Shown here: positions 7,668 to 63,597 of the stretch, piece by piece
Numbering within the stretch: the stretch's first letter is position 1
Layout of the letters: every line of letters starts with the position of its first letter
Source of the DNA: Podarcis erhardii
Lineage: Eukaryota
Length of the DNA: 64,000 bases
Assembly: GCA_964252035.1 (NCBI GenBank)
Contig: OZ176206.1
Direction: 5' to 3' (one strand)
The notes under the pieces: model-generated
Databases searched by the model: none
Seen by the model: the letters and a program-made list of their open reading frames with translations, nothing else
Told to the model about the DNA's origin: nothing
Translations under genes and position numbers: made by a program

Positions 7668-7676
7668 AGGTCTTTA
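7668..7676 (-). CDS. Gene B 9-nt stop-codon exon
   Basis: cctgaacag|TAAAGACCT|gtaagt; flanks near-identical to 32257-32400. Confidence 0.65.
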
Positions 7677-10281: not shown

Positions 10282-10317
<36 letters not shown>

Positions 10318-31454: not shown

Positions 31455-31715
31455 CAGTGTCATTGCAATTTTCTTTTATTTTTGCAAAGCGATTGCCATC
31501 CTCCAGGGGGGTAGTGGGGCAGTTTTTAGTGCCCTCTGCCCTCTATTACAAAGGCAACAAAATCAGTTACAGAAATTATCTAAAGTGTACTAGTATGATT
31601 CATGATTCTCTGGTTTCACTTGATTGGCTTTGGAGTGGCAATGTGGAATGCGCAGGAGCAAGAAGTCATTGTCAATCTGGTCCAGGAGCGTAGGTATGTT
31701 CAGTCCGTAATACAC
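31455..31715 (-). other. Gene A non-coding last exon (3' UTR) with polyA signal
   Basis: Acceptor ttattatttccag at 31716; AATAAA at 31475-31480 (minus); homologous to 4490-4738. Confidence 0.7.
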
Positions 31716-32256
31716 CTGGAAATAATAAAGTAAATCATATAAATTAATCTAGTGATGACAATCTTATTCTAAAGGGAATTGAGGGACAACCTACCAGTGT
31801 TCTTGAACCCAATCCCCATCTTTCCTAGCCAGCATAGCCAATGGTCAACAATGATGGGACTTAGCATCCAATAATATCTGCAGAGCATCATTTCTCTGGA
31901 GTCCAGGCCCTGAGTGGTATCACCACAGGACCAACTTTAACTCTCCAGCTTATCATCAGCGTTGAGTACATTATCTAGTCAACAGAGCTGAAGTTTTATT
32001 AGTAGGGTCTTGATTTCATTTTGTATGACGAAGTATATATGTTATACTGTGGATTCGAGTGAAAGCATATTCAGTGGTGACAGGGTACCCATCCTACCCT
32101 CTAATGTGATAGCTTCTCTACAGACTAGAAAATATTTCACACATAGGAGGCTCTCAGAGAAAGGTAATACTTTCCCCTGAAGTATTTCAGTCCCACCAGG
32201 ATATTGCTAATGACACAGATGAACCATATGTAGACTATATACATAGAAATACTTAC

Positions 32257-32265
32257 AATTCTTTA
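32257..32265 (-). CDS. Gene A 9-nt stop-codon exon
   Basis: gagcag|TAAAGAATT|gtaagt; paralogous to 7668-7676. Confidence 0.65.
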
Positions 32266-35200
32266 CTGCTCAGGTAGATTGTTGTTGAAAAAGAAGCAAA
32301 AGACACAAGTTATTTCTCTGTTTCCTTAGGGCACTAAGTAAGTCACTACAGGTCACTAAATGACTAGCAAACAGGCATTTAATTGAAAGGAAGGAGAGGA
32401 TACCCAGAACAAAGATTTACTTATCACTGAGAAATATATATTTTGTTCATAGAAGACCGACTGAAATTAATGGACATGACTAACTTAGGTAATTAATTTC
32501 AATCGGTCTCCTCTGAATAAATAGACCAAGGAAGGCAACCATTTCAGCACAGAGGGAAGCTTTTGTAGGCTCATAGCTACTGTAAAATGTTTCTTACGAT
32601 TATTTATTTTTAATATATTTGTTATATACTGCCCTTAATCAAGTTGAAAATACAAGATAAAAATGCAAATAACGAGTCACCAATCTGCACATTTGTCTGT
32701 TTTCCATTCTAGGCTTGTGGTAGAAAACTCAGCCATGTAAGATATCAGAAGGCTAAATGGATTCTTGAATACCACTCCTTTCCCCAACCGCGCCTCCCTT
32801 GCCCCCAGGGGGTAAGATTTGCATTTCATGCTCAGTGCCATTTTTCCTGCCTTCCAGCCCTGTTTGGGGGGTGGGAAACGAGGCACTATTCTGAGGGGGA
32901 AGCATTTTGGGTCCCCACATGAAATGCAGCACTAGGGGGGTGGGAATGGGGTTAACAACTTTATGCAGGCGCTCAACCTGCTGCTTCTCTCCATTTCCAC
33001 TTGGAGAACCATAGTACTGCTATTACTCAGACCGCACTAATGTCACTAGGACCACAAGCAAAGATTACACACAAATGCAACAGAAGCTACTGGGTATCAT
33101 CTAGTTAAATAATATTAATAATAGTAATAATGCCCCTTTCATTGTAAACCAAAATATTGCTCATTTAAAAGTATCAGCAATACTCACAACTACACCAGTA
33201 ACACCCTGAAATATAGAAGTGTGTATATAGTTAGTCTTTCCTCAGCAGCTCAAGCATTCATCACTGAGGTGTATAAGGGAGAGGACCTCAACATCCAATA
33301 GGCAGCATTGTCCCGTATTTCCATGTGCTGCATTGCATGTCAAGGCCCTGAGCCTTCCCCCATTTGTTGAATAATAAAACACATGGACACCAGTATTTTA
33401 GGTTAATGGGCTAATAAAGGCCACAACTTAATTGGTCACAGAATGTGAGTGGTATTGGCTTAGGCACTGGAATTGAACCGACTATATCTGACTCCTGCCC
33501 GCCATGCAGCTAGTCCAGTAAGGGTCAACCACCAGTAGGGGGAGCCCTGTGGATGTTCTGAGGCAGGAACCAAGATGGAGAACAACCAGGCCGTGCGGCT
33601 GCATAAATGCTATAAGCCACGCCCTCGGCCGACTGGATTGGTCAGTGGGGGTGTGACGCGGCTGGGACTCCCCCATGATGTGGGGGCACTGCCACACCCC
33701 CGCTGAACACGGTGGGAAGAAGAAGAAGAGTTTGGATTTGATATCCCGCTTTATCACTACCCTAAGGAGTCTCAAAGCGGCTCACAATCTCCTTTCCCTT
33801 CCTCCCCCACAACAAACACTCTGTGAGGTGAGTGGGGCTGAGAGACTTCAGAGAAGTGTGACTGGCCCAAGGTCACCCAGCAGCTGCTTGTGGAGGAGCG
33901 GAGACGCGAACCCGGTTCCCCAGATTACAAGTCCATCGCTCTTAACCACACTGGCTCTCTCCCCACACAGGGAAGGGAGTGGCCTACTAAGATCCCAAGA
34001 GACACCTGAAACTCTGCGGGAAACTGTGAGTAACCTTGTTGCTTAAGTACCAAACTCTTCAAGATAGTATTTCTGGAAATGTGGACCAAATCTAATATAT
34101 ACCATGATCTAACACTACTATGAAGAAAAGAGATAATTCAGCTGCAAAGGGTTCCTTCTATAGTAGGCTGCTTAGAACAGAAGAATCGATTATTTGTCAT
34201 ATTCTTTTTTGGCTAGGATCATATTCTGAGGCAGAAAAGAACTTCCACCTTGCCTCCCTACTACCTTCCCACTACGGACTATATAAAAAATACAGAAAAG
34301 TTCCAGAATACTCACGCTCAGTAAGTTGTTCAAATCAAGACCCTAAATTGAAAAACAAATTGAACTTATTATGCTTTCAGGTGCCCTACATTACGGATGA
34401 CTGCCTATGAAAATAGATAACTATCACCAGACAGTCTTCAATTAAAATGTGTTCTCTTAGAGGGGATGCCTGGTCCAAGTCCAGTTCAACAATATGGAAT
34501 CAAGTCCAGGTTCATATTACATGCTGCTTGTTTGTTTCATATGCTTCCTTTCCTTCACGGATTCTTCCTTTTATTACAGCTGTTAGCAATACTAAGGGAC
34601 CTTTTCCAGGAAGGATATGTGAGATATGAACATTTTAATACAACTCAAATTACATGGGCTTCAAGAGACAGAGCACTAGGAGAATTCAGATACTCCAATT
34701 ATTCATGTGGCATTCACACCCCAATGTTCCCAAAAGCTTTACACCAACAGGAAACCCAAGACTTGTCATATGAAGTGACAATATACAGTACAGTAGATCT
34801 GCAATTGACATGGGCGTCATGTTTCGGGGGTTTACGTACAAAGGCAAAACCATGCAAAGTGAGGAAGGCCCCATGGAACCATTCGCTCAAGGCCTGCTAC
34901 TACCTTGCCAGACTCTGGGAAGGTTGTGCGAGGTCTCTGGAAGGCTGTGGGAGGCTCCTGAGAGATATGAAGGGATGTCAATCCAAGTCCAGTTACATAT
35001 TACACTATCTTGGAGACACCTACAATAAGACATCCCAGCTTTTATTTCCTTCATGTCAGCAATGAATGTAGGGAAGCAGCAAATGATAATCAAATGCTCT
35101 TCACAAATGCCTACCTTTAAAAAAGGGCAATCATATTAACTCTGTCTGTTCTTCCCTGGCTTGGATCATATTTTGAAAAAGAGAAGAACTAAATGGAAAT

Positions 35201-38200
35201 AACAAGTTGAACTTCCTATGTTTTTGTGCTAAATTTTATAATTCTCTCCTTGGGTATCAAAAGTTGGCTGCCTGTAACAAATGGCAAACATTATAGCCCA
35301 ATGAGTTCTTCCCTTGCTGGGATCATCCTCTGACCACCTCCTTCCTTCCCTTCCTGCTTTCCATTTTCACACTACATACAATATAATAATCATTCAAAGG
35401 TTTCACAATACTCACGCTCAATAGACCTTGCAAACCCTACAGTGAAAAACAAATAAAACTTGTTAGGCTTTCATGTTGTTTGCGCCCCTTATAATCTGCA
35501 ACACTTGACAGAGCACAGTTGTTTATTCTGAAGAACCATCAGTACACAGTCCACTATGTAAAAGTGTCCTTTGAGAGAATATGTGGCCAAAGTCCAGTTT
35601 AAGGATACAGGGCACAGCAGATTATATCTAAAATATAATCGTTCAAAATTCCTGCCTTTGGAAAGGCAATGCATTTTAGCTGTGTGAATTCTTCCCTGGC
35701 TGAGGTTATATTGTGACAGAGAGTAACTTTTCCTTTCTTCCTCATCTCCACTTTCCCACTAAAAAGAAAACAAAAAAATCTCAATACTCACTGCCAAGGC
35801 TCCATTCGCATCAGCACGCTAAATTGAAAAGCAGATTGAACTGATTAGCAAATGGTATGGGAGATCCAGTCACAGATATGACACGTAACACATAGTTGGG
35901 TCAATACATATCAAGTACTAACAAGAATTCTTTCAAAGCGTTAATTCTATCAGGCAACAGCAAGCTATAACTCAGCATTGGAACACATTTTTAAAAGAAA
36001 AGCCTGACTAGCTTTTCAGATATCTTTTAAATAAAAAACTTTTTAAAGAAATTCCTGAAGTAAGTGCTATTATAGTTTGAGGTCTTGTTTATTCTGTTAT
36101 ATTTTACTCCAAGAAGGCCCATTTATCCTAAATAGAACCCCATAAGGTGGAGATGTATGTAATGTGATCCCATTGAGATCCCAAGATGAAAGTTTGCAAG
36201 CAGCTCTTAGAAATATTAAATAAATACATTTTTGGAAATTTATATATATATATTATAATAATTTTTTATTACTTTTTAAAATTGAAACTCTAAAGTAAGT
36301 ACATCATATAACATATAATATTAAAAACCATGGCGTTCTGAAGAGATTGGTGTTTTTAGTTTTGATATATCTGAATTCTGGGTTGAGCTTTTAAGGTGTT
36401 TGTGTAGTCTGGCAAGGCCAAAAAATAATAGTGGAGTTGGAGCATACAAGGGAAATCTGAAAATATTTTCATGATATTGCTTGGAAGTTCAGCTATTCTG
36501 GTGCCAGCCAACTCCTGCTTGCAGAGGTTTCCTAAAAAGCCTCTCTTAAAAGCCCAGATTCTTCTTTTCAAGATAAAACTATTTTCTGAACAAAAGAGAA
36601 ATCAGCTGCCCAAAACAAAGATATATAGACGGAGCCTAGGCTGCAGGGATTTAGAAAGGCAATTTTAGACCCTGGATGGGCCTAGAATTGCATTTTGCAG
36701 GGGGAGGTTCAAACAAAACAGACCATATAGGTAGTACACAAAGACTTCAAAATACTCACTTCCAGTGTCGAATGCACCTCAGGATCCTAAATTGAAAAGC
36801 AAATGGAATTACTTGGGCTTTTATGTACTCTTAACACTATGTCAGATGCCCACCTATACAGAGGGAAATCATCTACTTCGAAGGGTTGTCAGCTATTTAA
36901 AAGTGCTCTCTATATGAAGGGTGATTAATCAAAGTCCAGATACATATGAAACACTGCTTGGGGAGATCTACAATGAGACACCCCAGCTTTCATTTCCTTA
37001 ATGGTAGCAATGAATGTAGGGGGGCAGCAAATGCTTTGACAAATGCCTAGCTTTAAGAAAGGGCAATCATATTAGCTCTGTTTGTTCTTCCCTGACTCGG
37101 ATTCTATTTTTTGGGGGGGGGCTACTCTTTTCTTCCCCGCCTTCATCCCACTTTCCCATTATGGACTACGTAGACAAAACAATGGTTCACAATTCAAACA
37201 TTCACTTTCTCAACAGCACCCTAAATGAAAATAAATGGAAAGTTCTCACTACAAACCATAGAACAACCATAGAAATGTTTCACAATACTCACTTTCAACA
37301 ATTGATCTACAACCTACAGAGAAAAGCAAATTGAACATATTAGGCTTTCATGTTCTTTGCACGACATATATTTTGCAATACTTGACACAGGACAATTGTT
37401 TATTCTGAAGAACCATCAGCACACAGTCCACTGTGTAAAAGTGTCCTCTGTTTGAGAGAATGTTTAGCCAAAAGTCCAGGATTTTAGCTCATTTCCTTCC
37501 CTGAATCATTCCATACATTCTGGAAAAGAGGGGTGGCAAATAATATTAGTTGCCAGCCAAATGGCAAATATTATCGTCTAATGAGTTCTTCCATGGTTTG
37601 GGGCATCCACTGAGTCACAGAAGAGTTCCTCCTTCCTTCTCTCTATTCCTCCCATTTTAATGCAACAAACCGTATCGTAAACACACTAAGCTTTCGCAAT
37701 ACTCACTTGCAGTTTTTCTGGCAGACGAAGGCTCTAAATAGAAAAGCAAATTGAATTTATTAGATATTAGTGTCTGGCCAAAGTTCAGTATACAGAAATG
37801 TAAAAAATGAGACGTGCAGGGGGCAGCAGATTATATCTGAATGCCTAAAAGAATTCATTGCTTTAGGAAAGGGCAAGCATTTTAGCTCTGTGAATTCTTC
37901 CCAGCATGAGGTTATATATTGTAACAGAGAATAACTTTTCCTCTCCCCACCCCGAACTCCCTTCCACTTTCCCACTACAAATCATATAGGAAACCCGCTC
38001 AAGAATCACAATACATTCATGGATGCATTCACATCAAGACCCTAAACTCAAAAGCAAATCGAACTGATTAGCAAATGGTGGGAGATCCAGTCCCAGGTTT
38101 GCCACCTAACACATAGTTTCATCCTCAAGCAAGAATTTTACCGTTTCATGTGGCAAAGAACAAAATATAAAGGCAAACAAACGAAAACTGATTCAGTCTC

Positions 38201-41200
38201 ATGTGTTGCACAGCTGCCTTCATTTTAGCCAATCTCCTTTCGTGAATAATTCCGTATCTTCCCAAAAGGAGGGTCCCTCTCTAACAGTCAGGCTGATATA
38301 TTTGGTGTGGAATTCAGTCTCCTATTCATTAAGGTTAGAAGAGTAGACTGTCCAACTTGAAAAGACAAAGTAATAGTGGAGATGGGGCATACATGGGAAA
38401 TGTGGAAATAATTTTATGAACTTGCTTGAAAGTTCTGCTATACTAGTTGCCAGCCTGCTCCTGCTTGCAAACATTTCCTAAAAGCCTTTATATTAAAAAA
38501 ACAAAAACCCAAGATTCTTATTTCCAGTAGAACAATTTTCTGAATAGAAGATGATGCAAGGAGATCCACTGCCTAAGACAAAGATATAGAGACTGAGCCC
38601 AGGCTGTGAGAGTGTAGAACTAAGGCAATTTTAGACCCTGGATGGGTTTGGCAAATAATATTAGTTGCCAGCCAAATGGCAAACATTATCACCTAATGAG
38701 TTCTTCCATGCCTTGGATCATCAGAAGAGTTCCTTTCTTCCCTTTCTTTCTCCCATTTTATTACTACAAACCATATAGCAATCACACAAAGGTTTCACAA
38801 TACTCACTTGCAACGTCTTTTGCAAATCAAGGTTCTAAATAGAAAAGGAAATTGAATTTATTAGACATTCATGTCTGGCCAAGGTCCAGGATTTAAGGAA
38901 ACAGAAGTGTAAAAAAGGAGACCTGCAAGGGGCAGCAGATTATATCTGAATGTTTAAAATTTAATTCCTGGCTTTGGAGATGGCAAGCATTTTAGCTCTG
39001 TGAATTTTCCCCTGGCTGAAATTATATATTGTGACAGAGAATAACTTTTCCTTTCCTCCTTTCCCCCATCTCCTTTCCACTTTCCTGCTATAAATCATAT
39101 AGGAAACCCACTCAAGAATCACAATACATTCATGGCTGCATTCACATCAAGACCCTAAACTGAAAAGCAAATCGAACTGATTAGCAAATGGTATGGTGGG
39201 AGATCCAGTCCCAGGTTTGCCACCTAACACAGAGTTTCATCCTCAAGCAGGAATTCTACCATTTCTTGTGGCAGAGATCAGAATATAAAGGCAAACCAAT
39301 GGAAGCTGATTCAGTCTCACGTGTTGTGCAGTTGCCTTCATTTTTGCCAATTTCCTTTCTTGAATTCTTCCATACCTTCTCGAAAGGAGGCTCCCTCTCT
39401 AACAGCCAGGCTGATATATTTGGTATGGAGTTCACTCTCCTACTCATTAAAGTTAGAAGAGCAGATAAAGGAGAGCAGACTGTCCAACTTGCAAATTCAA
39501 AGTAACAGTGGAAATATTTGTATGACCTTTCTTGGAAATTCCGCCTTCCTTCCCTCCTTTCCTCTCATAATACTACTACAGACCATATAGTAATCACACA
39601 AAGGTTTCACAATACTCATGTTCAACGTTTCTCCCAAACCAATTTTCTAAATAAAAAAGCAAATTGAATTTATTAGACAAGTTAATTGGACAGCTTATAA
39701 TTTGTGCTATTTTACAGAGGACATTTGGCTTTTCTGAGGAGCCATGAGTACACAGAACTCTATGTAAAGGTATCCTGGCCAAAGTCCTGTTTAAGGATAC
39801 AGAAATTGGAGAAGGGAGGCTTGCAGGGGCCTCCTGTTTTGTTTCTCTTTCTAGTTCTTGCCCATATTGAGGATCATATCATAGCATGAAAGGATGCTAT
39901 ATGAATATTTGATATTTCAAAGCCTACAGTGGAAAATGGCATGGTGGGAGATATAGACACTGAAATGGCACATAGCACATAGTTTCATTCTCAGGCAGGG
40001 ATTCCCTCTTTTCCTGAAGGAAAGATCAGAATAAATAAGCAAACGGATCTAAAGACAGTCTCACATGTCTTCATTTTAGCCAATCTCCTTTCCTGGGTAA
40101 TTCCATACCCTCCTGAAAGGAAGGTCCCTCTCAAGTAACCAGGCTGATAGATTTGGTGTGGACTTCACTCTCCTTTTCCATTAAGGTTAGAAAAGCAGAT
40201 GAAGGAGAGTTGAGTGTCCAACGGGCAAAGACAAAGTATTAGTGGAGATGGGGCATAACATGGAAAATTTGAAAGTGCTTTCATGAAACTGCCTGGAGGT
40301 TCAGCTATACTAGTTACCAGCTAGGTCCTGCTTACAGACCTTTCCTTTAAAAAACACCTTTATTAAAAACCCACAATGCTTATTTCCAGTACAACAATTT
40401 TCTGAAGAGAAGAGGATGCCTTTGCCCTAGGCGATCAGCTGCCCCCAAAAGGATATGAAATTAGAGCCCAGGATGTGGGGGTTCAATAAAACAATTTAAA
40501 TTCCTGGGTGGACCTAAAATTTAATTTATTAGCTAGTCCTTACTCAACAGCTAAATCATTCATCACTGAAGTGCCTGAAATAGGAGACTTCAGCATTCAA
40601 AAGGCAGAATTTTACCATATTTTCATAAACTGCGTAATAAGATCCAAAGAGATACCAGAACCTCTAACAAAAATGTGATCAAGCTTGTTGCTTTTGCACC
40701 AAACTTTTCAATATATTCTTTCTGGAAATATAGACTGAATCTAACACACACAAGGATCGAACAGTACTATGAAGAGAAGAGAGAACTCAACCAAACAAAG
40801 GTTCCTTCTGTAGCAAACTGATTAGAACTGGAGAACAGATTGTCATATACTTGCCAGGCTGGGATCATACTTTGAGGCAGAAAAGTACTCGCTCCCTCCC
40901 TCCCTCCCAGTTTCCCACTCCAGAGCATACAATAAATAAACAAAAGTTCCACAATACTCACATCCACTAAACCAGACACACCAAGACTCTAAATTGAACA
41001 ACAAAATGAACTGATTAGCAAATGGCATCGTGGGAGAACAGATTGTTCGTCATTTTCTTCGCTGGCAGTGATATCATATTTTGAGGCAGAAAAGCCCTCC
41101 CTCCCAGTTTCCCACTCCAGATCATACAATAAGTACAAAAAGTGCCATAATACTCATGTCCACTACATCAGACAAACCAAGATTCTAAATTGAACAACAA

Positions 41201-44200
41201 ATTGAAATGATTAGCAAACTGCATGATGGGAGCTCCAGCCACAAGTATATCACGTAACACAGTTTTATCTTCAGGCAGGGATTCTCCCACTTCATGGGGG
41301 AAAATGAGAATTTACAGGCAAACTAGGGTTAGAAGAGCGGATAAAGAAGAGCAGACCGTCCAACGTGCAAAGACAAAGTAATAGTGGAAAATGTGTAAAA
41401 CAACAACAACAAAAAGTAACTTATGTAAAATTTGAAAATATTTTCATGGAATTGCTTGGACATTCTGCTAGACTGGTTGCCAGCCAGTAGGATAAGATAA
41501 GTTATTGATGAGGCTAAAATTCCTTGGTTTGGAATTCAAACTTCCTTGAGTAATAATGACTGGCTTTCACAAATGGAAAACATTATAGCGTAGTGAATTT
41601 CCCCCCCAGTGGGATCATCCTATGAGCAACAGAAGACCTTCTCCCTCCCACTACAAATCTTAGGGTATGAAGATTTCTCAATACTCACGCTAGTTGCTCC
41701 ACCCAGAAGCTAAATTGAAAAGGAAATTCAACTTGTTAGTCTGCCATGTTCTCTTAACTGCTTAACATGTGGAAATGTCATGTAACACATATTTAGGTCC
41801 TAAGGCAAGGATTCCCCTATTCATCAAGGAAACATCAGAAGAGAAAGCAGAAGCGATCTGAACTGATTCAGTCTCATGTGCATCACAACTGCCTCCATAT
41901 TAGTCATTTTTCTTTACAGAGCAATTCCATAACAAAGGAGAGGAATCCAACCAAATTGCAAAGAGAAGGAAATAGTGGAGGTGGGGCATAATGCGGAAAA
42001 TCTGAAAACTCTTTTTAGAAAAATCATTGGGTAAACTATTTGCCAGCCAGATCCTGCTCCCATATGTTTCCTAAGAAACCTTCTGGATTTCAAATTATTG
42101 TAAATAATCTGTAATGTAACGCACTTTTTGTATGTTACTTTAACTAATAAACGCATATTTTTACCCTGCCCCATGCATTTTTGTACACACTGCTTGCCTG
42201 GAGAGCACCACTGCAACATTCAGTGAATGTTGAATTCAGAAGCGCTGATATGTTCCAGTTAGTACAGCATTTTGTTTCAGAAAGTGAGAAGTAGGCAAGT
42301 GGGGTTTAAAATGATAGCTGAATCTAATTTCTCCCTCATCTCTACATCAGACTGGATTTTTTCTTCCCCTTGGCTTTCTTCATCATTTCCTGAAGTTCCC
42401 CTCCCCAATATTTGGGGCTAATAGATTCAGTGAAATGTCTATCATCATTTGCCAAAAGGCTTAGGACAGAAGGTAAAGGAGAGGATATCAGACAGACCAA
42501 CCCACAGGGACAAAAATACAGCAGAGGGACATAACATCAAAAAGGTCTCTTTTAGGAAATAACTAGATGTTTTCCAGCCTACATCAAAGATATATTTTTT
42601 TTAATTGTGATTTCAGTTGCAGTATAAAAATTTCCCAAAGAGAAGGACAGGACCCCCCGCCCCACAAAAAACACCTCCCCAAAGAACAGTATAATGAAGG
42701 AGCCCAGAATAAATTCTACCCATGCCTGGGCTATTTGATTTAGTTTCAGATTCCCAGAAGACATGAACCAGAATCAATCAGGATACGACCACATGACTAA
42801 ATGTTAAAAAATAAATAATTCTTTTTTTAAATTGAAAAGTCACAATAAATACTGGATACTTACTGGAGATCTCTTCTTCCTCTGTTGTTGTTTTACAAAG
42901 GGAAACAATAGTGTTTTTTTAGTTTTTTGCTTTTTTGCTTTTCATATATTTTATCATCAAATATATTAAAAGAAAATACAGAAAAGATCAAATTGTTATT
43001 TATTTCTGTTATTTATTTATTTATGTTATTACCCCATTTCTGAGTATATTACAGGAGAAACACATTATACTTGTTTCTGTTCACATCTCTGTATTAGAAG
43101 TGACTCTCAACATACATGAGGGTTATGTTCCAGGGACAACGCATAAAGCCAAAATTTTGTATAATCAAAATACATTCTCCCTGCACCTCCAAACACTCTC
43201 CTAAGGTAGGGTTAACAAAGTTTCTCCCCTCAAACGTCCGCCCCCTTATTTATTTATGTTTAGCCAAGTGAGTAAAGCTGAACGTGCATAAGTTACGTTG
43301 TGAGTTACCAGTATGAGAAAGAAACTTGTGTTGCTATTGATGTGCACTTTGACCCCCGTGTACATTAACATGCAACTGAAGTCCTCAATTCCCACTAGAA
43401 ATCCAGATTTCTCCCTCTCCTGGCTGTTCTGCAAGCTGCAGTTTCTGGAGGCAGCACTACCTGCTCACATTATGCTGAAAACTGTCTCATTGCTATCCGT
43501 AATATATGCATGGTTATCAATCTATCAAAAATATGTATCAAATAGCATATTTTTTTACTTTTACCAATAGGCAGCATTTCCTCATATTTCCATATGCTAC
43601 ATATTAAGATCCAAAGAGACACCTGAAACTCTGAGGGAAACTGAGTAACTCTGTTGCTTTAGTACCAAACTCGTCAAGATCTAATACACACCATGAATCC
43701 AACACTACTACAGAAAGAAGAGATAATTTAGCTGCAAAGGCTTCCTTCTATAGTAGGCTGCTTAGAACAGAAGAATCGATTGCTTGTCATATTCTTCTCT
43801 GGCTGGGATCTCATATTCTGAGCGAGAGAAGAACTTCCTCCTTGCCTCCCTCCCACCTTCCCAATATAGACTATACAATAAATACACAAAAGTTCCACAA
43901 TACTCACGCCTAGTACTTTGGACAAATCAAGACCCTAAATTGAAAAACAAATTGAACTTATTAGGCTTTCAGGTACCCTACATTACAGATGAGTCTTTGA
44001 AAGTAGATAACTGAAAACAGTCAGTCTTCAATAAAAATGTGTTCTCTTTTGAGGGGATGCCTGGTCCAAGTCCAGATCTTTCCCAAAAATCCTTGTGTAT
44101 TTTCCCTTCCAGGACAATAGTATTTTGACACAAATTAAAAGAGGATGCCATGGAAATCAGTTTCCCAAAGCAAAAGGAAAGGAACAGAATCCAATCTGTG

Positions 44201-45973: not shown

Positions 45974-46012
<39 letters not shown>

Positions 46013-52000: not shown

Positions 52001-55000
52001 TCCTTGGTTTGGAATTCAAACTTCCTTGAGTAATAATGACTGGCTTTCACAAATGGAAAACATTATAGCGTAGTGAATTTCCCCCCCAGTGGGATCATCC
52101 TATGAGCAACAGAAGACCTTCTCCCTCCCACTACAAATCTTAGGGTATGAAGATTTCTCAATACTCACGCTAGTTGCTCCACCCAGAAGCTAAATTGAAA
52201 AGGAAATTCAACTTGTTAGTCTGTCATGTTCTCTTAACTGCTTAACATGTGGAAATGTCATGTAACACATATTTAGGTCCTAAGGCAAGGATTCCCCTAT
52301 TCATCAAGGAAACATAAGAAGAGAAAGCAGAAGCGATCTGAACTGATTCAGTCTCATGTGCATCACAGCTGGAAATAGTGGAGGTGGGGCATAAAGCAGA
52401 AAATCTGAAAACCATTTTTAGAAAAATCATTCGGGTTTTCATTTGGGTATACTATTTGCTAGCCAGATCCTGCTCCCATATGTTTCCTAAGAAACCTTCT
52501 GGATTTTCACTTCCACTACAACAATGTTCTGAACAGAAGGAAAAGTGGATGCCAAGAAGATCAGCTCCCCCAAGCAAATACAGAGAGAAAGAGTTCAGGC
52601 CCTGTACTGAGTGGTCTTATTTGGGGTGGAGCACACAGGAAGACACATGAATATCCATCACCAACTGTGGTGTGCTTGGTGAGCATGGGTGATAGGGTCT
52701 TCTTGGTGGCTGTGCTCAGGTTATGGAACTCAGCCATGGAAGAGTTCCATCTCTTGGGCATCAGCTAAACACAACAAAATTTAAGTGTACATTTCGCTAC
52801 TAGATAAGTGATATTTCTCCCATGTCTGTCATTGCTGGCAGTTTGCATGGGTGTTGCTTCGTATGCTTTCTTGGTTTCAATGACTACTCTCCTTACATTA
52901 CTTCTTAGCCATCCTGAGGCACCTATTTTAGGATGGATCCCAAGTGCTTCAGTTAGATGTGGTTCACAGTTGCCATCAGACAGGGGATGGCCAAATAGGT
53001 CCCTTCTGGTTTCTCTCAGATCCTCATTTTCCCAAAGGAGAGGATACCAGACAAACCAACTCACAGGGACAAAAGGATAGCAGAGGGACATAACGTTTGA
53101 AAAGTCTCATTCAGGAAATAACTAGAATTTTTTTCTAGCCTCCATTCAAAATATTGATTTTCATTTCCAGTATAAAAAAATCCCAAAGAGAAGGACAGGC
53201 TCCCAATGCCCCTTAATCCCCCCCCCCCAATAACAGTATAATGACTGAGCCCAGAATAAATTCTATTGATTCAGGGGCTTTTTGTGTTAGTTTCAGATTT
53301 CCAGAATCAATCAGGAAACTACAACACAACTAAATGTTAATAAATAAATAAATAAAAATTTCAATTGAAAAGTCACAATAAATACTGGATACTTACTGGA
53401 GATCTCTTCTTCCTCTGTTGTTAGTTTACAAAGGGAAACAATAGTGGTTTTTTTAGTTTTTTGCTTTTTTGTTTTTCATATATTTTGTCATCAAATATAT
53501 TCCAAGAAAATACAGAAAAGATCAAATTGTTATTTATTTCTATTCACATCCCGTTACTAAGTATATTACAGGAGAAACACATTATATTTGCTTCTGTTTC
53601 TGCTCAATCTCTATATCACAGTGGTACCTCTGGTTAAGAACTTAATTTGTTCTGGAGGTCCGTTCTTAACCTGAAACTGTTTTTAACCTGAAGCACCACT
53701 TTATCTAATGGGGCCTCCCGCTGCCGCTGCACAATTTCTGTTCTCATCCTGAAGCAAAGTTCTTAACCCGAGGTACGATTTCTGGGTTAGCGCAGTCTGT
53801 AAACTGAAGCGTCTGTAAACTGAAGCGTCTGTAACCCGAGGTACCACTGTACATTCAACTGTCAACATAACATGAGGGTAATGTTCTAGGGACAACTCAT
53901 AAAGCTAAAATCGTGTATAATCAAAACACATTCTCCCTGCACCTCCAAACACTCTCCCAAGGTGGGGTTGCCAAAGTCCCCCCCCCCCAAAAAAAACCCC
54001 TCCACTCCTTATTTATTTACTTTTTGCCAAGTGAGTAAAGCTGAATGGTGCCGCATTCCTAGATGGCAGAGGCTTCACTGGGGGAAGGAACTCAACCTTC
54101 AGAGCTTTTCCTGCTGGACCGTGGGGCCATAAGCCCCCATGGCCTATCAGGAACCAAATCCTAGCCTGCACCCTGCTTTGGCAACTGCAGTTCCTGGAGG
54201 TAGCAGTATCTGCTAACATTATACTGAAAAAGTCTCATTTTTATCCATAATACAGACAGTTATCAATCTATCAAAAATATGTATCAAATAGCATATCACT
54301 TCAATCATTTGTCTCTGAAACACCAAGATTAAGAGCAAGGAAGCGGTCCCTGTTTTTTGGGGGGGGGGGTTAGCTTTTCAAATCTCCCTAAAGTTAATGG
54401 ATGTCGAAGAAAAGTAATACAATACTTACAGAAAGTCCAGGCAGGCCCTAAAATAGAAAACAGTGTGTTTTGTGAAAACATCATTTGAGACAAAATAAGC
54501 AAATCTGGGCATGCTTCCCAACACTACTATACAGATCTCCAGATTTAAGGGAAACAAAGTTCCTGAGAGCACATATGAATAGTTGAGCACAGTTAAATCA
54601 CAACAGCCACTTCTGTGGGACACTGTTATGAACTAAGGGATACTTCTCGACTTCATGATCACAATTAATATACCACATTTTTTCGTCTATAAGACACCGC
54701 CTATCTTGGGGGCCTCAAAATTTAGAAAATAGGTGGAGACTGAGCTTTTGGGAAGGATTATTTGGGGGGGGGATGCCAAAAATTGTTCACCCAACAGAAT
54801 GCAGCACACAACCCCTTGCATTGCTTACAATCTCCGCTTACAATCTCGGGCTCGCGCCAAAAAACATTCGCCCGTCCCCCCTTGGCACTACCCATGTATA
54901 AGACAACCCTAAATTTTGAACCTCATTTTTGGGTCAAAAAAGTTTGTCTTATACATGGAAAAATATGGTATAACATGTTTGATTACTAAAAGCAGTTGCA

Positions 55001-58000
55001 AAGATTAGGGCCCTGAACCAAATTTTCATACTTCTAAAAGGAAGAGCCAAGCTGTGGTGTTTTTCTATTCTTGTTAAAAAGGAAAAAGAAACTTTTTGGA
55101 TATCGCTAAGGCTAAATAAGACTAAAGGTAAGTAATGTCTAATACTCACAGGCACTGGCAGGCTATTCTAAAATAGAAAGCAAGAATCCATTTTAACATA
55201 ATCAATATAACATAATCAGTGTAATTAATAAATAAACACACACAAAAACACACATCCCCCTTCTTTTAGTAAAAGTACCTAGTGGCCATACAGTGTTATC
55301 AAAAAATATACAAAATAAAATAAAATGCACAATGAAAACATAAAACCAGTTTCTAAATATGCAGCATAAGGGCTCAGTTCCTCAGAGGTTAATGTAAATG
55401 GGAACAGTAGGCAATCACTCTGCAAAGCAAGGTGTTTCCTCAGTAGATATTCACAGTATCCTCATCGGACTGTAATCAGGCCAGCATAGTTCAGGCAGAA
55501 CCCTGCTATGAACAAAGGGATACTTCTCGACTGCATGATCACAATTAATATACCACATTTTTCTGTCTATAAGACGCCCCTATTTTGGGGGCCTCAATAT
55601 ATAGAATATAGGGGGAGATTGAGCTTTTGGGAAGGATTATTTGGGGGGGATGCCAAAAATTGTTCACCCGACAGAATGCAGCACACAACCCCTTGCATTG
55701 CTTACAATCTCCGCTTACAATCTCGGGCTCACGCCAAAAGACATTCGCCCGTCCCCCCTTGGCACTACCCATGTATAAGACAACCCTAAATTTTGAACCT
55801 CATTTTTGGGTCAAAAAAGTTTGTCTTATACATGGAAAAATATGGTATAACATGTTTGATTACTAAAAGCAGTTGCAAAGATTAGGGCCCTGAACCAAAT
55901 TTTCATACTTCTAAAAGGAAGAGCCAAGCTGTGGTGTTTTTCTATTCTCGTTAAAAGGGAAAAAGAAACTTTTTGGATATCGCTAAGGCTAAATAAGACT
56001 AAAGGTAAGTAATGTCTAATACTCACAACCACTGGCAGGCCATTCTAAAATAGAAAGCAAGAATCCATTTTAACATAATCAATATAACATAATCAGTATA
56101 AGTAATAAATAAACACACACAAAAACACACATCCCCCTTCTTTTAGTAAAAGTACCTAGTGTGGCATACAGTGTTATCATAAAAATATAAAAAATATAAT
56201 AAAATGCACAATGAAAACATAAAACCAGTTTCTAAATATGCAGCATAAGGGCTCAGTTCCTCAGAGGTTAATGTAAATGGGAACAGTAGGCAATCACTCT
56301 GCAAAGCAAGGTGTTTCCTCAGTAGATAATCACAGTATCCTAATTGAACTGTAATCAGGCCAGCATAGTTCAGGCAGAACCCTGCATAGGAGTGCTTGCA
56401 TAGTTCTTTCAGGCAATAGCCACATACCCTCCAACATTTCTTCAATGAAAATAAGGATGTCTCATTCCATAATGATCATTTTACTATTTATACCCCACAC
56501 ATTGTACTGGGTGGCCCAGCCATTCTGGGTGGCTTCCAACATATATTAAAAACATGAAACATAAAGAAAAAATCCCTCTACAGGATTGCCTTCAGACGGC
56601 ACAGGGGTCGGATGTCTCCACACCCTCCAACAATGATACAATGAATGTAGGGATGTCCTAAAGAAAAGTGGGACATTCCGGGATAAAATCAGAAACCCGT
56701 ATGGCTTCTCTAAATCAGGGACGTCCCTGGAAAATCGTTACACTTGGGGGGGGTCTGTAGCCATAACATAGAAAATACAGTACTGGATCACATCTACACC
56801 ATATATTTAAAAGACATTCAAGTGCTTTTAAAGCACAGGTCTTAATGAGCTTCTAAAGCACATGGATAATCATTGCCCAAAGGTTAGTAATATAGAGAAC
56901 TTATAAGTACTTCAGCTGGGAGGTTCTAAAACACAAAACAGCAAGTTATGTGAAAACATCATTTGGGACATAAAGAAGCAAAACTGGGCAAACCTCCCAA
57001 CACTAATATATCTATGGCTCTCCAGAATGAAGGGGAACATAGCTCCTGAGAGCATTTGTAAGCCCAGTCACCTTTTTATATATTGGACATCATCAGAAGT
57101 CACAAAAGCTTCTTTAAGTCTGTCTTTGATATCATGTACAGAAATGGTAACCTATGAGGTATATGGGGAAGTGTGCTATTTAAGACTAAAGGAATGTATT
57201 TAGAATTAGGGTTGCCATATCTTAAAGAGCAAAAAAAAGAGGACAGTCCAAGCCGGGGAAAGAGGTGCAGGTGTGGGGGGCGGCGACCACTGTGCCACTA
57301 CACCTCTTTCTGATCTCCCTAAAGTTAATGAATGTCCAAGAAAAGTAATTCAATACAATTACAGAAAGTCCAGGCACGCCCTAAAATAGAAACCAGTGTG
57401 TTTTGTGAAAACATTGTTTTGTAAAAACAGGTTGTGCACAACATATGAATAGTTGTGCACAATTAAAGCTTAAAGGTTTAGCCACTTTTCTCTTTCCATC
57501 GGCATGAATTTACTATTTAACTCATCAACATAATAAGACACCGCTGGGGAACACTTCAATGAAATGAGCTGCAAAATCTTGCAGTAAAGACAAGCCCCCC
57601 TGCCCCAACAAAGGATTAAGGCTTTACATAGAGGATTTCTAGTACTTACACCTCCAAGAAGGTTCTAAAAAGATAAAGAAAGCAATTATTCCATCATGTT
57701 TTCTGAACACAAGAATGATAAATATAGCAAACATTTTGATTATTTCTCACTGGTAAAGGTGGACCCCCACAGTGTGTATCTGAAGAAGTGTGCATGCACA
57801 CGAAAGCTCATACCAAGAACTGACTTAGTTGGTCTTTAAGGTGCTACTGGAAGGAATTTGTTTTGTTTTGACTATGGCAGACCAACACGGCTACCTATCT
57901 GTAACCCCACAGGAAGGTCACTGTTGTTTCTCTCTCCTACAGTTCACCCATATCCTCTCAGTCTGCTTTCCATGCTTCAGGTCATGGATTTCTTCAGAAG

Positions 58001-61000
58001 TGTACACATCCTTTACATATAATGCTACTCCTTCTCCATTCCTGTTTGGTCTATTCCTTTTAAACTGTATATACCACTCAGTTCCTACATTCCAGTCATG
58101 AGCCTTATCCTGCCAGGGTCCAGTACTGCCTGCTAGGTCACTTTTGCCAAGCTGAATTAAAATAAATTTTTAGACAATCAACATCTCTTTTAAGCAATGT
58201 TTCCTTAGTTTTAATGCCCTTTAATATATTTGTGGGAGTATAGAAAATCAGGCACACTTCTGGCATAAGCATCTCTTTCCCAGAAGTATTTGGTTACTTT
58301 GTGTAGTGAATGGCCAAAGTAGGGAAAATGGATCATTAAGGCATTACATAGGGGATTTCCAATACTCACAGTTCCGCCAGTAAGTCCCTCAGTAAGGCCC
58401 TAAAGAAGATAAAGAAATAAGTTAGTCCATGTTTTATGAAAATGATAAATATAGTGAACATTTTGATGATTTCACACTGGCAAATGTGGACTTGCTGCCT
58501 GTTCTATAAAGGTCTCACTTATGTCAAATTTCCACAATAGAAGGCATCATTGACTGGATATCCTACTGGGAGCATCTGGGGTGAGCTATGAGATTGAAGC
58601 CAGCTTCTCGCTCCACTAGGATGCTTTCCCTTACTGACATGGTGGTGCCCAGTGTCAGTCCTGTTCCTGCCACTGTGCAGGTTCAGGTAGTCTGGAACCA
58701 ATGCCTAAGCAACAACTCACATGATGTAATCAATAAAGTTGTGGCCAAAATTAATGCCAAAAAACCTTAAACTAAATTCTGTGTCAATTGTGACATTATT
58801 TTGGGGGTGGTTTTGGGGGTCTTCACAGGCAATTAAATCACAACAGCTACTTCTGTGGGACAGCTCTAGGAAATAAGAGACACTATCTGACTGTACAACC
58901 CTAATTAAAATATAAAATATTACTGTATATATTTGCTTTTTTAAACTTAGTTGCAAAGATTAGGGCCCTGAACCAAATTTTCATACTTCTAAAAGGAAGA
59001 GCCAAGCTGTGGTGTTTTTCTCTTCTAGTTAAAAAGGAAAAAGAAACTTTTTGGATATCGCTAAGGCTAAATAAGACTAAAGGTAAGTAATGTCTAATAC
59101 TCACAGACACAGGCAGGCCATTCTAAAATAGAAAGCAAGAATCCATTTTAACATAATCAATATAACATAATCAGTATAATTAATAAATAAACACACACAA
59201 AAACACACATCCCCCTTCTTTTAGTAAAAGTATCTAGTGTGGCATACAGTGTTATCATAAAAATATAAAAAATATAATAAAATGCACAATGAAAACATAA
59301 AACCAGTTTCTAAATATGCAGCATAAGGGCTCAGTTCCTCAGAGGTTAATGTAAATGGGAACAGTAGGCAATCACTCTGCAAAGCAAGGTGTTTCCTCAG
59401 TAGATAATCACAGTATCCTAATTGAACTGTAATCAGGCCAGCATAGTTCAGGCAGAACCCTGCATAGGAGTGCTTGCATAGTTCTTTCAGGCAATAGCCA
59501 CATACCCTCCAACATTTCTTCAATGAAAATAAGGATGTCTCATTCCATAATGATCATTTTACTATTTATACCCCACACATTGTACTGGGTGGCCCAGCCA
59601 TTCTGGGTGGCTTCCAACATATATTAAAAACATGAAACATAAAGAAAAAATCCCTCTACAGGATTGCCTTCAGACGGCACAGGGGTCGGATGTCTCCACA
59701 CCCTCCAACAATGATACAATGAATGTAGGGATGTCCTAAAGAAAAGTGGGACATTCCAGGATAAAATCAGAAACCCGTATGGCTTCTCTAAATCAGGGAC
59801 GTCCCTGGAAAATCGTTACACTTGGGGGGGGGGTCTGTAGCCATAACATAGAAAATACAGTACTGGATCACATCTACACCATATATTTAAAAGACATTCA
59901 AGTGCTTTTAAAGCACAGGTCTTAATGAGCTTCTAAAGCACATGGATAATCATTGCCCAAAGGTTAGTAATATAGAGAACTTATAAGTACTTCAGCTGGG
60001 AGGTTCTAAAACACAAAACAGTAAGTTATGTGAAAACATCATTCGGGACATAAAGAAGCAAAACTGGGCAAACCTCCCAACACTAATATATCTATGGCTC
60101 TCCAGAATGAAGGGGAACATAGCTCCTGAGAGCATTTGTAAGCCCAGTCACCTTTTTATATATTGGACATCATCAGAAGTCACAAAAGCTTCTTTAAGTC
60201 TCTCTTTGATATCATGTACAGAAATGGTAACCTATGAGGTATATGGGGAAGTGTGCTATTTAAGACTAAAGGAATGTATTTAGAATTAGGGTTGCCATAT
60301 CTTAAAGAGCAAAAAAAAGAGGACAGTCCAAGCCGGGGAAAGAGGTGCAGGTGTGGGGGGCGGCGACCACTGTGCCACTACACCTCTTTCTGATCTCCCT
60401 AAAGTTAATGAATGTCCAAGAAAAGTAATTCAATACAATTACAGAAAGTCCAGGCACGCCCTAAAATAGAAACCAGTGTGTTTTGTGAAAACATTGTTTT
60501 GTAAAAACAGGTTGTGTACAACATATGAATAGTTGTGCACAATTAAAGCTTAAAGGTTTAGCCACTTTTCTCTTTCCATCGGCATGAATTTACTATTTAA
60601 CTCATCAACATAATAAGACACCGCTGGGGAACACTTCAATGAAATGAGCTGCAAAATCTTGCAGTAAAGACAAGCCCCCCTGCCCCAACAAAGGATTAAG
60701 GCTTTACATAGAGGATTTCTAGTACTTACACCTCCAAGAAGGTTCTAAAAAAGATAAAGAAAGCAATTATTCCATCATGTTTTCTGAACACAAGAATGAT
60801 AAATATAGCAAACATTTTTATTATTTCTCACTGGTAAAGGTGGACCCCCCAGGAAGGTCACTGTTGTTTCCATGCTTCAGGTCATGGATTTCTTCAGAAG
60901 CAGTGGTGTAGCGTGGGTTGTCAGCACCCGGGGCAAGGCAAGTAATTTGCGCCCCTTAACCCGTGGATTTGCGCCCCCTAACCTGTGGATTTGCGCCCCC

Positions 61001-63597
61001 TAACCCGTGGATTTGCCCTAACCCCAGATGTTGTGCCCGGTGTGGCCGGCCCCCCCTGCCCCCCCACGCTATGCCACTGTTCAGAAGTGTACACATCCTT
61101 TACATATAATGCTACTCCTTCTCCATTCCTGTTTGGTCTATTCCTTTTAAACTATATATATACCACTCAGTTCCTACATTCCAGTCATGAGCCTTATCCT
61201 GCCAGGGTCCAGTACTGCCTGCTAGGTCACTTTTGCCAAGCTGAATTAAAAGCTGTAATTGGTCTTGCTTGTTTCCCATGCTCTGTTAATTTGGGTAAAG
61301 ACAACTGTCTTATCAAAATATCTTAGTGAGAACGTGGAAGTTCATCTGGACATAATACAATCATATTCAAAGCTCTCCAGCATTACAGAGAACAATGTCT
61401 CTGATACAACTTAAGAATAGTTGAACACATCAGAGTCAGTCTGGAGTGGCTAGATTTGTACTACGCATATTGCAATTAAATACCCTTGCCTTCAATGGAG
61501 CCCTGGTATAGCTCTGTGGATCTCTTCAGTCACGTGCAAAACACATCTAGGAACTGAGAGACACTTCTTAACTAGGCGACCAAATATAACACACATAATA
61601 GTTTTTCATTTTTATGCAAAGTAATAGGTCTTTACTCTCTATTTGACATAAGTCTCATCAACATTGAATCTCTTCACAATTTAGACAGCATCATTGCCTG
61701 GACTTCCAACTCTTCAAATGGTGGCCTGTTGCTGGAAAGACAACTACAGAAGTCCCAGATGATGCAGTCTGTTATTCTTTGTGGCCCTGTTGATATTTCA
61801 TCTGGTGTAAAGCTAAGCATCACTGTAACTGCATGCAAAACTTTGAAGCCAATGTCAAACTTCCGTCTGTGACCATACAGCCAGATTGTATCTGACATAT
61901 TCAGACTCTCTTTAAAAACAACAAGAAGTCTGATCATGGTTTGCAGAGAATGGCTATGCCCTTCCTCCTCTGTTGACCCCCGGTGACAATTAATAATGTT
62001 CCAATTAAAAGTAACTTGCAATACTCACGTCTAGTAAACCGCCATCCTGAAATAAAAAGGAGGAAATCAATTTTTAGACATCAACATCTCTTTTAAGCAA
62101 TGTTTCTTTAGTTTTAACGCCCTTTAATATCTTTGTGGGAGTATACAAAATCAGGCACACTTCTGGCATAAACATCTCTTTCCCAGAAATATTTGGGTTG
62201 TTTGTGCAGTGAATGGCCATAACAGGGAAAACGCAGCATTGGCATTCATAACCTACATGAGGTATCTTCAACCTTTTCTAGACCCAGGACTCACTAACTA
62301 GGTGATCAAATATAAGATACCTAACAGGTTTTTGTTTTTGTTTAGATTTTGTATGATATTATATACCTTCACATAATACTTTGGTTTACGTATTTGTTTT
62401 TCCAAATTATAAGGGCCATGTCATGCAGCCAGTATGCCTTAACCACTTCAATCACACAGCAGTATTGTGGCACAAATCTCATCAGCCAATACTGAGGGAC
62501 ACTTCAATGAACTAATCTGCAAAATCTTGCCCAAAACACAAGCCTCTCCCTGAGTGAAGGATGTTGTGGATCATTAAGGCATTACATAGAGGATTTCCAA
62601 TACTCACATTTCCACCAAGAACGCCCTAAAGATGATAAAGAAATATGTTAGTCAATCGTATTATAGGAACATGATAAATATAGTGAACATTTTGATGATT
62701 TCACACTGACAAATGTGGACTTGCTGCCTGTTCTAAATAGGTCTCGCTTATGTCAAATTTCTTCAATAGAAGGCATCATTGATCTTTCCCCTCTTAGGAT
62801 GCTAGTCCAGGGCCACCTACTCCTTATGTTTAAAACCACAGGCACATTTCATCTATCTTTGTGTGTTTGTGGGGGGGGGGGTGTTTTATCTGCCTTCAAG
62901 GATTGTTGCCATGGTACTGCTATGAGTATGCAAGGAGAAAGTAGGCTGTATACAAGGTCCTTTATCTGCTGTAAACCTGGGCATCACTGTAACAACATGC
63001 AGAACTTTGAAGCCTGATAGACCTACCAAATAACTCCTAGAGCTGTTGAATTTCGTTGGACCTGATGACAGAGCTTTGCAGCCAAGGAGTCTTGATGTTT
63101 CATTGGAACAGCATTTCTCAAAGCAACTTTGCAACTTCTACCATTGGGACTGCTTTCCATTTTGCAGCCATTGCTACTCACCCTTCACCAGTAATGATGC
63201 TGCTCCAGGACAAACTACTCCTTATGTTAAAGCCACAATAACATTTAATTTCTCTCACTCTTTCTGTTTCTCTGTGTTAAATATCTTGAAAGGTTGGAGG
63301 TATTTCCCTCTCTAATTAAAAGTAATATAAAATACTCACACTAGTAAACCACTACTATGAGATAGAAAGGAGAAAGGAGTACGCAGAACTTTGAAGCCAA
63401 TGTCAGACTTCCACCTGTGACCATACAGCCAGATTGTATCTGACATATCATTCAAACTGTCTTTAAAAACAACAAGAAGTCTGATCATGGTTTGCAGAGA
63501 ATGGCTATGCCCTTCCGCCTCTGTTGACTCCCAGCGACAATTAATAATGTTCCAATTAAAAGTAACTTGCAATACTCACGCCTAGTAAACCGCCATT
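32263..63597 (-). CDS. Gene A: micro-exon-encoded, probably secreted polyprotein (partial, 5' end beyond window); 34 coding exons of 15-30 nt, ~249 aa, two RKKR|SP sites
   Basis: Each exon has a pyrimidine tract + AG acceptor and a GT(G/A)AGT donor (GTAATT for the two GVPGLS exons), seen on the + strand as (a)atactcac/atacttac ... cta/ctg. All lengths are multiples of 3. Phase 0 is stop-free; the other frames hit TAG (exon 63580-63597) or TGA (exon 58370-58399). Joined translation: [249 protein letters not shown]. Confidence 0.85.
33188..41709 (-). CDS. Gene A peptide module 2 (10 micro-exons)
   Basis: 41689-41709 LLGGATS; 40962-40988 SLGVSGLVD; 38808-38834 NLDLQKTLQ; 37707-37733 SLRLPEKLQ; 37293-37313 VVDQLLK; 36760-36786 DPEVHSTLE; 35792-35818 RADANGALA; 35416-35436 GLQGLLS; 34316-34342 GLDLNNLLS; 33188-33205 GVTGVV. 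Confidence 0.85.
33719..33960 (-). mobile_element. tRNA-derived squamate SINE (Squam3-like)
   Basis: Reverse complement gagagccagtgtggttaagagc...tgaccttgggccagtcac...(cttctt)n tail. Confidence 0.8.
42864..42881 (-). CDS. Gene A micro-exon RKKRSP (second furin-type site)
   Basis: caacaacag|AGGAAGAAGAGATCTCCA|gtaagt, identical to 53397-53414. Confidence 0.85.
43908..52189 (-). CDS. Gene A peptide module 1 (10 micro-exons of 21/27 nt)
   Basis: 52169-52189 LLGGATS; 51559-51585 SLGVSGLVD; 50218-50238 KLGETVN; 49411-49437 NLDLQKTLQ; 47567-47593 SLALPEKLQ; 47153-47173 VLNQMVN; 46621-46647 DPQVHSTLE; 45618-45644 RADANGALA; 45242-45262 GLQGLLS; 43908-43934 GLDLSKVLG; all tag|...|gtgagt. Confidence 0.85.
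45974..46008. repeat. (TG)n microsatellite, absent at the equivalent site (~36160) of the sister copy
   Basis: Direct reading. Confidence 0.9.
47634..48302 (+). mobile_element. CR1 LINE 3' fragment, present in only one duplicate copy
   Basis: ORF 47661-48125 is a CR1 RT C-terminus ([16 protein letters not shown]); (attctatg)n tail; empty site at ~37765. Confidence 0.92.
49161..49286. mobile_element. Short Penelope-like retroposon fragment, copy-specific
   Basis: agaagtgtgcatgcacacgaaagctcatacc...; flanked by agttctt(c/g)ca; absent at ~38705. Confidence 0.6.
53397..53414 (-). CDS. Gene A micro-exon RKKRSP (first furin-type site)
   Basis: caacaacag|AGGAAGAAGAGATCTCCA|gtaagt; matches the R-X-K/R-R proprotein convertase consensus. 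Confidence 0.85.
53619..53849. mobile_element. Tc1/mariner MITE, absent from the sister copy (~43100)
   Basis: TIR cagtggtacctc. Confidence 0.85.
54430..63597 (-). CDS. Gene A N-terminal Gly/Leu/Pro-rich module (12 micro-exons, 74 aa)
   Basis: Exons: 63580-63597 NGGLLG; 62608-62625 GVLGGN; 62029-62046 DGGLLD; 60730-60744 NLLGG; 60443-60460 GVPGLS; 59105-59122 NGLPVS; 58370-58399 [10 protein letters not shown]; 57650-57664 NLLGG; 57363-57380 GVPGLS; 56027-56044 NGLPVV; 55150-55167 NSLPVP; 54430-54447 GLPGLS. Confidence 0.8.
54640..56390. repeat. ~877 bp tandem duplication (MITE + NxLPV exon)
   Basis: 55150/56027 offset 877; both copies carry the same MITE. Confidence 0.85.
54670..54970. mobile_element. 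Tc1/mariner-like MITE (duplicated at ~55550-55848)
   Basis: TIR taccacattttt...tataagac / gtcttata...aaaatatggta. Confidence 0.75.
57780..57905. mobile_element. Short Penelope-like retroposon fragment, copy-specific
   Basis: Same family as 49161-49286; absent at ~60848. Confidence 0.6.
60901..61079. mobile_element. hAT-family MITE, copy-specific
   Basis: TIR cagtgg(t/c)(g/a)tagcgtggg; perfect TSD ttcagaag; empty site at ~57995. Confidence 0.88.

Follow-up and report, generated by a model that had tools for sequence, protein, structure and literature searches.

A gene of at least 34 micro-exons in Podarcis erhardii that probably encodes a processed secretory polyprotein

Both the vertebrate spliceosome and annotation pipelines have difficulty with exons shorter than about 50 nucleotides (nt), the former in defining them and the latter in finding them. 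We describe here a gene built almost wholly from such exons, found on the minus strand of a 64,000-nt stretch of Podarcis erhardii DNA (assembly GCA_964252035.1, contig OZ176206.1; hereafter the window) and called gene A below. Its architecture is closest to that of two described systems, the P/Q-rich SCPP/casein genes and the schistosome micro-exon genes (MEGs). P/Q-rich SCPP genes are fast-evolving secretory genes that occur in tandem clusters and contain many small phase-0 exons produced by tandem exon duplication; their stop codon lies in a short penultimate exon and their last exon is untranslated. Phase 0 is the commonest intron phase in SCPP genes, and SxE sites and a P/Q-rich domain are further features of the family (PMC9122587). 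MEGs are trematode genes with 10-20 exons, in which symmetric micro-exons, mostly multiples of three in length and separated by long introns, stand between a signal-peptide exon and a 3' exon. Exon skipping generates diversity among their products, which are secreted and come from gland-like tissue, and automatic annotation struggles with them (PMC10526429).

The architectural traits listed above for P/Q-rich SCPP genes recur, or are predicted, in gene A. However, its exons are smaller and far more numerous (at least 34 of 30 nt or less), its visible product is rich in Leu and Gly rather than in Pro and Gln and lacks SxE sites, dibasic RKKR exons are present, and the start codon of a neighboring paralogue appears to lie in the first exon. 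The likeness to schistosome MEGs is one of architecture only: the coding sequence consists mostly of symmetric micro-exons, with a signal exon seen in the paralogue only. There is no homology between the two, and gene A is a vertebrate gene with at least 34 exons and putative convertase sites. We consider that gene A probably encodes a secreted polyprotein processed by convertases, and that it is one member of a tandem cluster of micro-exon genes.

Exon set and transcripts of gene A

The part of gene A visible in the window runs from 63597 to about 31461. Its exon set was rebuilt independently of the original prediction, which a model had made from the sequence alone and which proposed at least 34 phase-0 micro-exons of 15-30 nt, all multiples of three, on the minus strand. 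We scanned that strand for splice sites enclosing short open segments and kept only units with both an intact AG and an intact GT. The same set was recovered, with 34 micro-exons between 63597 and 33188 (12 of 18 nt, 12 of 27 nt, seven of 21 nt, two of 15 nt and one of 30 nt; Table 1). Each is bracketed by an AG following a pyrimidine tract and by a donor of the GT(A/G)AGT type, the donor being a weaker GTAATT in two exon copies, at 60460 and 57380. The outer limits first proposed, 31455-63597, also agree with the rebuilt gene: the first exon seen opens at 63597, and 31455 lies just beyond the poly(A) site. Introns range from 269 to 2127 nt, with a median of 922.

Joined together, the exons give 747 nt, the whole of the visible coding sequence. 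This is 2.3% of 32,143 nt, in keeping with the low coding share over about 31 kilobases (kb) claimed previously, and the encoded peptide of 249 amino acids (aa) is indeed devoid of Cys, Phe, Trp and Tyr. There is no stop codon in frame 0, against 15 in frame 1 and 20 in frame 2, so that phase 0 is the only open one, as had been asserted; shuffles of the joined sequence contained 13.4 stops on average, and none out of 2000 was free of them. The exons are not 34 independent events, as many are recent copies of one another. Still, the length is divisible by three in 27 of the 27 distinct exon sequences. One extra unit, at 63340-63354 on the minus strand, has a good donor; depending on the choice of acceptor, it yields either a 15-nt segment with an in-frame TAG or a 12-nt exon encoding Trp and Phe. 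It was excluded from the gene model.

RNA evidence was drawn from four runs of related species, whose RNA label is a guess, mapped on positions 31440-37439; the joints obtained reach the last 8 of the 36 exons of the gene (34 micro-exons, the stop exon and the last exon). Contigs from runs X1, X2 and X4, which represent two related organisms, contain the joints 34342|35416, 35436|35792, 35818|36760 and 36786|37293, all of them GT..AG on the minus strand, and a contig with a loose end at 37313 continues into the end of exon 37733-37707, the next one upstream. A further joint, 31715|34316, holds nine letters between its two sides, namely the reverse complement of TAAAGAATT, the 9-nt exon 32265-32257. 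This exon starts with TAA in every variant in run X4, and a loose end at 31715 reads the final codons of exon 34342-34316 followed by TAA. The poly(A) site of the gene is marked by the ends of RNA contigs at 31461-31466. Altogether, splicing in two related species follows the predicted borders through a run of six successive micro-exons, the stop exon and the last exon. The original prediction had named, as what would speak against it, the lack of any spliced transcript or borders that break phase 0; the contigs join micro-exons where expected and phase is preserved, consistent with phase-0 introns throughout the coding region. The TAA of the 9-nt penultimate exon places the whole last exon behind the stop, so that it is not translated. 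The joint 36786|37293 passes over a pseudo-exon with a decayed donor, a copy of which ends at 47060.

Gene A is therefore a real, spliced protein-coding gene, with splicing observed for the last eight exons and predicted for the others. Its last exon belongs to a dominant transcript of the sample behind run X4: word depth there is 78,000-104,000 per bin and reaches about 250,000 at single places, compared with about 90-110 in the adjoining introns, a ratio of about 1000. Many variant contigs occur in this run, among which alleles, paralogues and isoforms are not distinguishable. Of the sampled words of the last exon, 12-40% were also detected in each of 18 RNA-type runs, which come from 10 related organisms, and runs resembling the genome's own DNA contain all of these words. 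No RNA of P. erhardii itself was found.

Tandem duplication and the splicing frame

Between 34 and 64 kb, the window consists of tandem duplications nested within one another. Likeness is 95-97% between two 10-kb blocks, 34960-41891 and 44786-52371, whose sub-units are spaced by about 0.4-1.3 kb and are 70-85% alike. A 3-kb block in the head region of the gene is present twice (55871-57768 and 58949-60849) with 99% likeness. The flanks of the units are nearly identical, with a CTAAT about 25 nt upstream of the exon, a pyrimidine tract ending in TTTAG, and GTGAGTATTG downstream. A motif scan with the shared acceptor context gave 48 matches on the minus strand and six on the plus strand, and the shared donor context gave 55 and 26, respectively. 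This strand asymmetry, the frame statistics and the RNA joints together rule out that the exons are an artefact of chance or of repeats. An intron of the head block also contains a 22-nt tandem repeat of 3.3 copies, 94% alike, at 60945-61016.

We compared the two 10-kb blocks for the distribution of their differences. Differences amount to 1.5% in the splice flank (42 nt per exon), 6.3% in the exon bodies and 8.7% deep in the intron (flank against exon, p = 0.0008; flank against intron, p = 4e-10). Flanks are again better kept than exon bodies in the 11 older units of one block, with 82% likeness over the 30 nt upstream of the exon, 71% over the 30 nt downstream and 49% in the exon itself. Constraint thus falls on the splicing frame and not on the exon bodies, which makes gene A a clear case of introns more conserved than exons. 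Of the 17 differences that the blocks show in exons, 15 alter a residue. Six changes fall in a single 21-nt exon, whose own intron has 19 in 400 nt (p = 0.0007). Positive selection on the exon bodies was considered in this light; it is suggestive for that one exon and not significant overall.

Seven units between 38019 and 51781 on the minus strand are dead: their acceptor is intact, but C|GT at the donor has become C|AT, as CpG decay on the opposite strand would produce. The dead unit at 39646 is the counterpart of the live exon 50238-50218, and module 2 of the gene is therefore one exon shorter than module 1. Nine of the 34 live exons end in C and thus present the same vulnerable CpG at their junction. 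In many units (for example, in the flank 47594-47623), the pyrimidine tract contains a TTGC some 15 nt ahead of the AG. Regulated neuronal micro-exons feature a UGC motif at this spacing, and the TTGC of the unit flanks may be a conserved inclusion signal.

The symmetric phase-0 micro-exons arose by nested tandem duplication of intron-exon units of about 0.4-1.3 kb, and later duplications of 3-kb and 10-kb blocks enlarged the array. The near-invariant frame, consisting of the branch-point-like CTAAT, the pyrimidine tract, TTTAG and the GTGAGTATTG donor, would make exons of only 15-30 nt recognizable. Exon bodies drift or diversify, except for a Leu pattern with a period of nine residues, and donor loss from C|GT to C|AT retires units, so that module content turns over fast. 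With at least 34 micro-exons and a transcript that dominates one run, gene A is a natural test bed for micro-exon recognition, for which the near-invariant branch point, pyrimidine tract and donor are a candidate signal.

The product of gene A and competing explanations

Each RKKR motif of the visible peptide (residues 75 and 163) is encoded by an exon of its own at a module border. The two RKKRSP exons split the peptide into a 74-aa head rich in Gly, Leu and Pro (with pieces such as NGGLLG, NLLGG and GVPGLS), a module of 84 aa and a module of 83 aa (77 aa without the exon skipped in relatives). Both modules are acidic, with an isoelectric point of 4.5-4.7, and weigh about 8.5 kDa each. Their exons follow a 9- or 7-residue pattern with Leu at fixed exon positions, and the autocorrelation of the peptide peaks at 9 and 16 residues. 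No N-glycosylation sequon is present in the 249 aa. A 50-aa joined piece had no match among proteins of 28-87 aa and no Pfam family, the long open reading frames (ORFs) of the window contain no Pfam domain, and our literature searches found no described lizard gene of this kind.

Gene A resembles convertase-processed polyproteins in that its modules are parted by R-X-K/R-R sites. Among such proteins, the precursors of frog skin peptides (magainin, caerulein and PGLa type) have a signal-peptide exon, dibasic sites and repeated modules on separate small exons; they are expressed at very high levels in glands and diversify fast, and their modules are short cationic amphipathic helices. The modules of gene A, in contrast, are about 84 aa long and acidic. 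We also tried reading the peptide as an amphipathic alpha-helix and rejected it: shuffled sequences have the same hydrophobic moment at 100 degrees, and only the 9-residue periodicity given by exon length stands out.

Three observations lead us to favor a polyprotein: the dibasic exons stand at module borders, the signal exon of the paralogue comes directly before a dibasic exon, and the very high expression is typical of a secretory product. The first of these supports the polyprotein that was originally proposed. A signal peptide, seen in the paralogue only, would take the prepro-polyprotein into the secretory pathway, where furin-type convertases would cut after the two RKKR sites and release the Gly/Leu-rich head together with two peptides of about 8.5 kDa that are acidic and rich in Leu. 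A specialized epithelium or gland would produce these peptides in very large amounts. If so, gene A may represent a new family of processed secretory peptides, with candidate roles in skin, oral or scent glands, and would illustrate how abundant reptile secretory products can escape annotation based on ORFs.

Several points weigh against this view. The RNA joints cover only 8 of the 36 exons and come from related species, in runs with guessed labels. The 34-exon model agrees with them at six consecutive micro-exons and departs from them at exon 33205-33188, which the relatives skip, their transcripts passing from 34316 directly to the stop exon. An upstream signal-peptide exon, which the original prediction had suggested looking for, was sought, and nothing signal-peptide-like was seen in 31-64 kb. 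As the repeat array also runs off the window at 64000, the 5' end of gene A lies outside it, and secretion of its product, which remains a prediction, rests on a paralogue whose last exon was found in no RNA run. Cleavage at RKKR is likewise proposed on the basis of a motif. Furthermore, the non-synonymous share of the differences between the 10-kb blocks is not significantly above neutral (p = 0.19), and the exon bodies could be only weakly constrained. Finally, with no helical amphipathic signal above shuffles, a role as membrane-active peptides is without support.

Other explanations must be weighed against the same evidence. Gene A might be a divergent P/Q-rich SCPP gene of the casein and enamel-matrix lineage, encoding an uncleaved, disordered matrix or mineral-handling protein in which RKKR is incidental. 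This likeness, raised in the original prediction, holds for the architecture: introns are in phase 0 throughout, small exons have multiplied by tandem duplication, and a stop in a tiny penultimate exon precedes an untranslated last exon. It does not extend to composition (Leu 23.7% and Gly 17.7% against Pro 5.2% and Gln 4.4%, with few acidic residues) or to SxE sites, of which there is none in the visible parts, that is, the 249 aa of gene A and a 115-aa model of the paralogue. Because these two tests failed, we do not file gene A under SCPP. The ATG exon of the paralogue, about 70 nt behind a TATA-like box, also looks like a first exon and not like exon 2, on which SCPP genes carry a SPARC-L-like signal peptide behind a non-coding exon 1, and we consider an SCPP origin unlikely. 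SCPP genes are clustered beside SPARCL1; here, the cluster of micro-exon genes takes up the entire window. A keratinocyte product of the outer skin layers, of the KRTDAP/DMKN/SBSN type, appears more improbable still. Genes of this tandem cluster encode Gly-rich, repetitive secreted proteins, partly from small exons, and are highly expressed; gene A, too, is a Gly-rich low-complexity repeat made from small exons, with tandem paralogues and great abundance in one sample, and presumably recalls the DMKN and SBSN repeats. However, the 50-aa piece found no match in the Pfam scan, the literature search gave no reptile record of the cluster, and to our knowledge neither Leu-rich modules nor RKKR exons are features of its members.

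It could also be argued that the abundant transcript has no functional protein, being the output of a non-coding or decaying locus, or of a young expansion whose frame survives through recency. Exon bodies diverge about as much as deep intron (6.3% against 8.7%, p = 0.18), many units are already dead, and more than one junction separates the stop codon from the mRNA end downstream of it. Yet none of the 27 distinct exon sequences, whose old copies share only about 49% likeness, departs from a length divisible by three or closes frame 0. Leu occupies conserved positions within exons, and the splice frames are strongly constrained. The stop is, moreover, only 9 nt before the last junction, too near for the usual transcript-decay rule to apply. 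We regard the absence of a functional protein as very improbable. A bolder extension of the polyprotein explanation, which we offer as a tentative and rather doubtful idea, is that gene A belongs to a vertebrate counterpart of the schistosome MEG system: tandem secretory genes with an invariant splicing frame and interchangeable cassettes, whose repertoire is reshaped by unit duplication, CpG donor loss and exon skipping. The diversification of an externally acting secretion would then have a mechanism dedicated to it, and gene A would possibly hold the longest known run of exons of 30 nt or less in a vertebrate gene.

Table 1. Features of gene A, of its retired units and of the downstream paralogue; all lie on the minus strand of the window.
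Feature	Position	Basis or remark
Gene A head block, 12 micro-exons of 15-30 nt	54430..63597	splice context, phase, translation
Head exons 1-6	63597-63580, 62625-62608, 62046-62029, 60744-60730, 60460-60443, 59122-59105	
Head exons 7-12	58399-58370, 57664-57650, 57380-57363, 56044-56027, 55167-55150, 54447-54430	
First RKKRSP exon, 18 nt	53414-53397	putative furin-type R-X-K-R site; first module border
Module 1, 10 live exons (21 or 27 nt each; about 82 aa)	43908..52189	common acceptor/donor context
Module 1 exons 1-5	52189-52169, 51585-51559, 50238-50218, 49437-49411, 47593-47567	
Module 1 exons 6-10	47173-47153, 46647-46621, 45644-45618, 45262-45242, 43934-43908	
Second RKKRSP exon	42881-42864	identical to first; second module border
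Module 2, 9 live exons	34316..41709	last five joined in RNA
Module 2 exons 1-5	41709-41689, 40988-40962, 38834-38808, 37733-37707, 37313-37293	
Module 2 exons 6-9	36786-36760, 35818-35792, 35436-35416, 34342-34316	
18-nt exon GVTGVV, good splice sites	33205-33188	prediction; skipped in RNA of relatives
9-nt penultimate exon TAAAGAATT, first codon stop TAA	32265-32257	RNA joint
Non-coding last exon, AATAAA about 20 nt before end	31715 to ~31461	RNA contigs
Pseudo-exon, decayed donor GTTTGA	37220-37200	skipped in RNA
Dead units, donor ATGAGT	start 51781, 41184, 39646	motif context
Dead units, donor ATGAAT	start 49752, 48584, 39154, 38041	motif context
Paralogue gene	4402..26421	sequence comparison
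Paralogue TATA-like box	near 26418	
Paralogue exon 1, predicted 22-aa signal peptide	26349-26284	ATG at 26349
Paralogue exon 2, GLRSKRSP	25494-25471	related to the RKKRSP exon of gene A
Second intact copy of promoter and signal exon	16243-16181	96% alike
Paralogue exon GLRKKRSP	9692-9669	
Paralogue TAA exon	7676-7668	same as the 9-nt exon of gene A
Paralogue last exon	~4756-4402	80% alike to that of gene A

The downstream paralogue and minor observations

The paralogue starts 5 kb downstream of the poly(A) site of gene A. Its micro-exons, of 18-33 nt, are flanked as a block by the RSKR and RKKR exons and differ from those of gene A in composition, being rich in Ala, Gly, Pro, Thr and Ile. Two copies exist of the promoter and signal exon but only one each of the stop exon and the last exon, which suggests either alternative first exons or a recent internal duplication. 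The duplicated last-exon segment reaches about 0.7 kb beyond the poly(A) site in both genes (3785-4046 and 30752-31020; 76% alike); hence the gene-level duplication took in the downstream flank.

An open frame of 41 codons stands at the start of the last exon in both genes (31593-31715 and about 4630-4756 on the minus strand). It is free of insertions and deletions between them, although it lies behind the stop exon, and the copy in the paralogue has an in-frame TAA two codons earlier. The frame may be a relic of a former coding tail. We pursued it as such a relic or as a misannotated tail; a search of 1.84 billion representatives returned only TPR and repeat noise, and the candidate was dropped.

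Lastly, a stretch of about 234 nt in an intron of gene A, at 33716-33949, is covered by RNA contigs at a depth of 9,000-135,000 in each of the four runs. It has no match in Rfam, and dozens of different contigs run off both of its ends. This stretch behaves like an abundant interspersed repeat resembling a short interspersed element, and not like a part of gene A.

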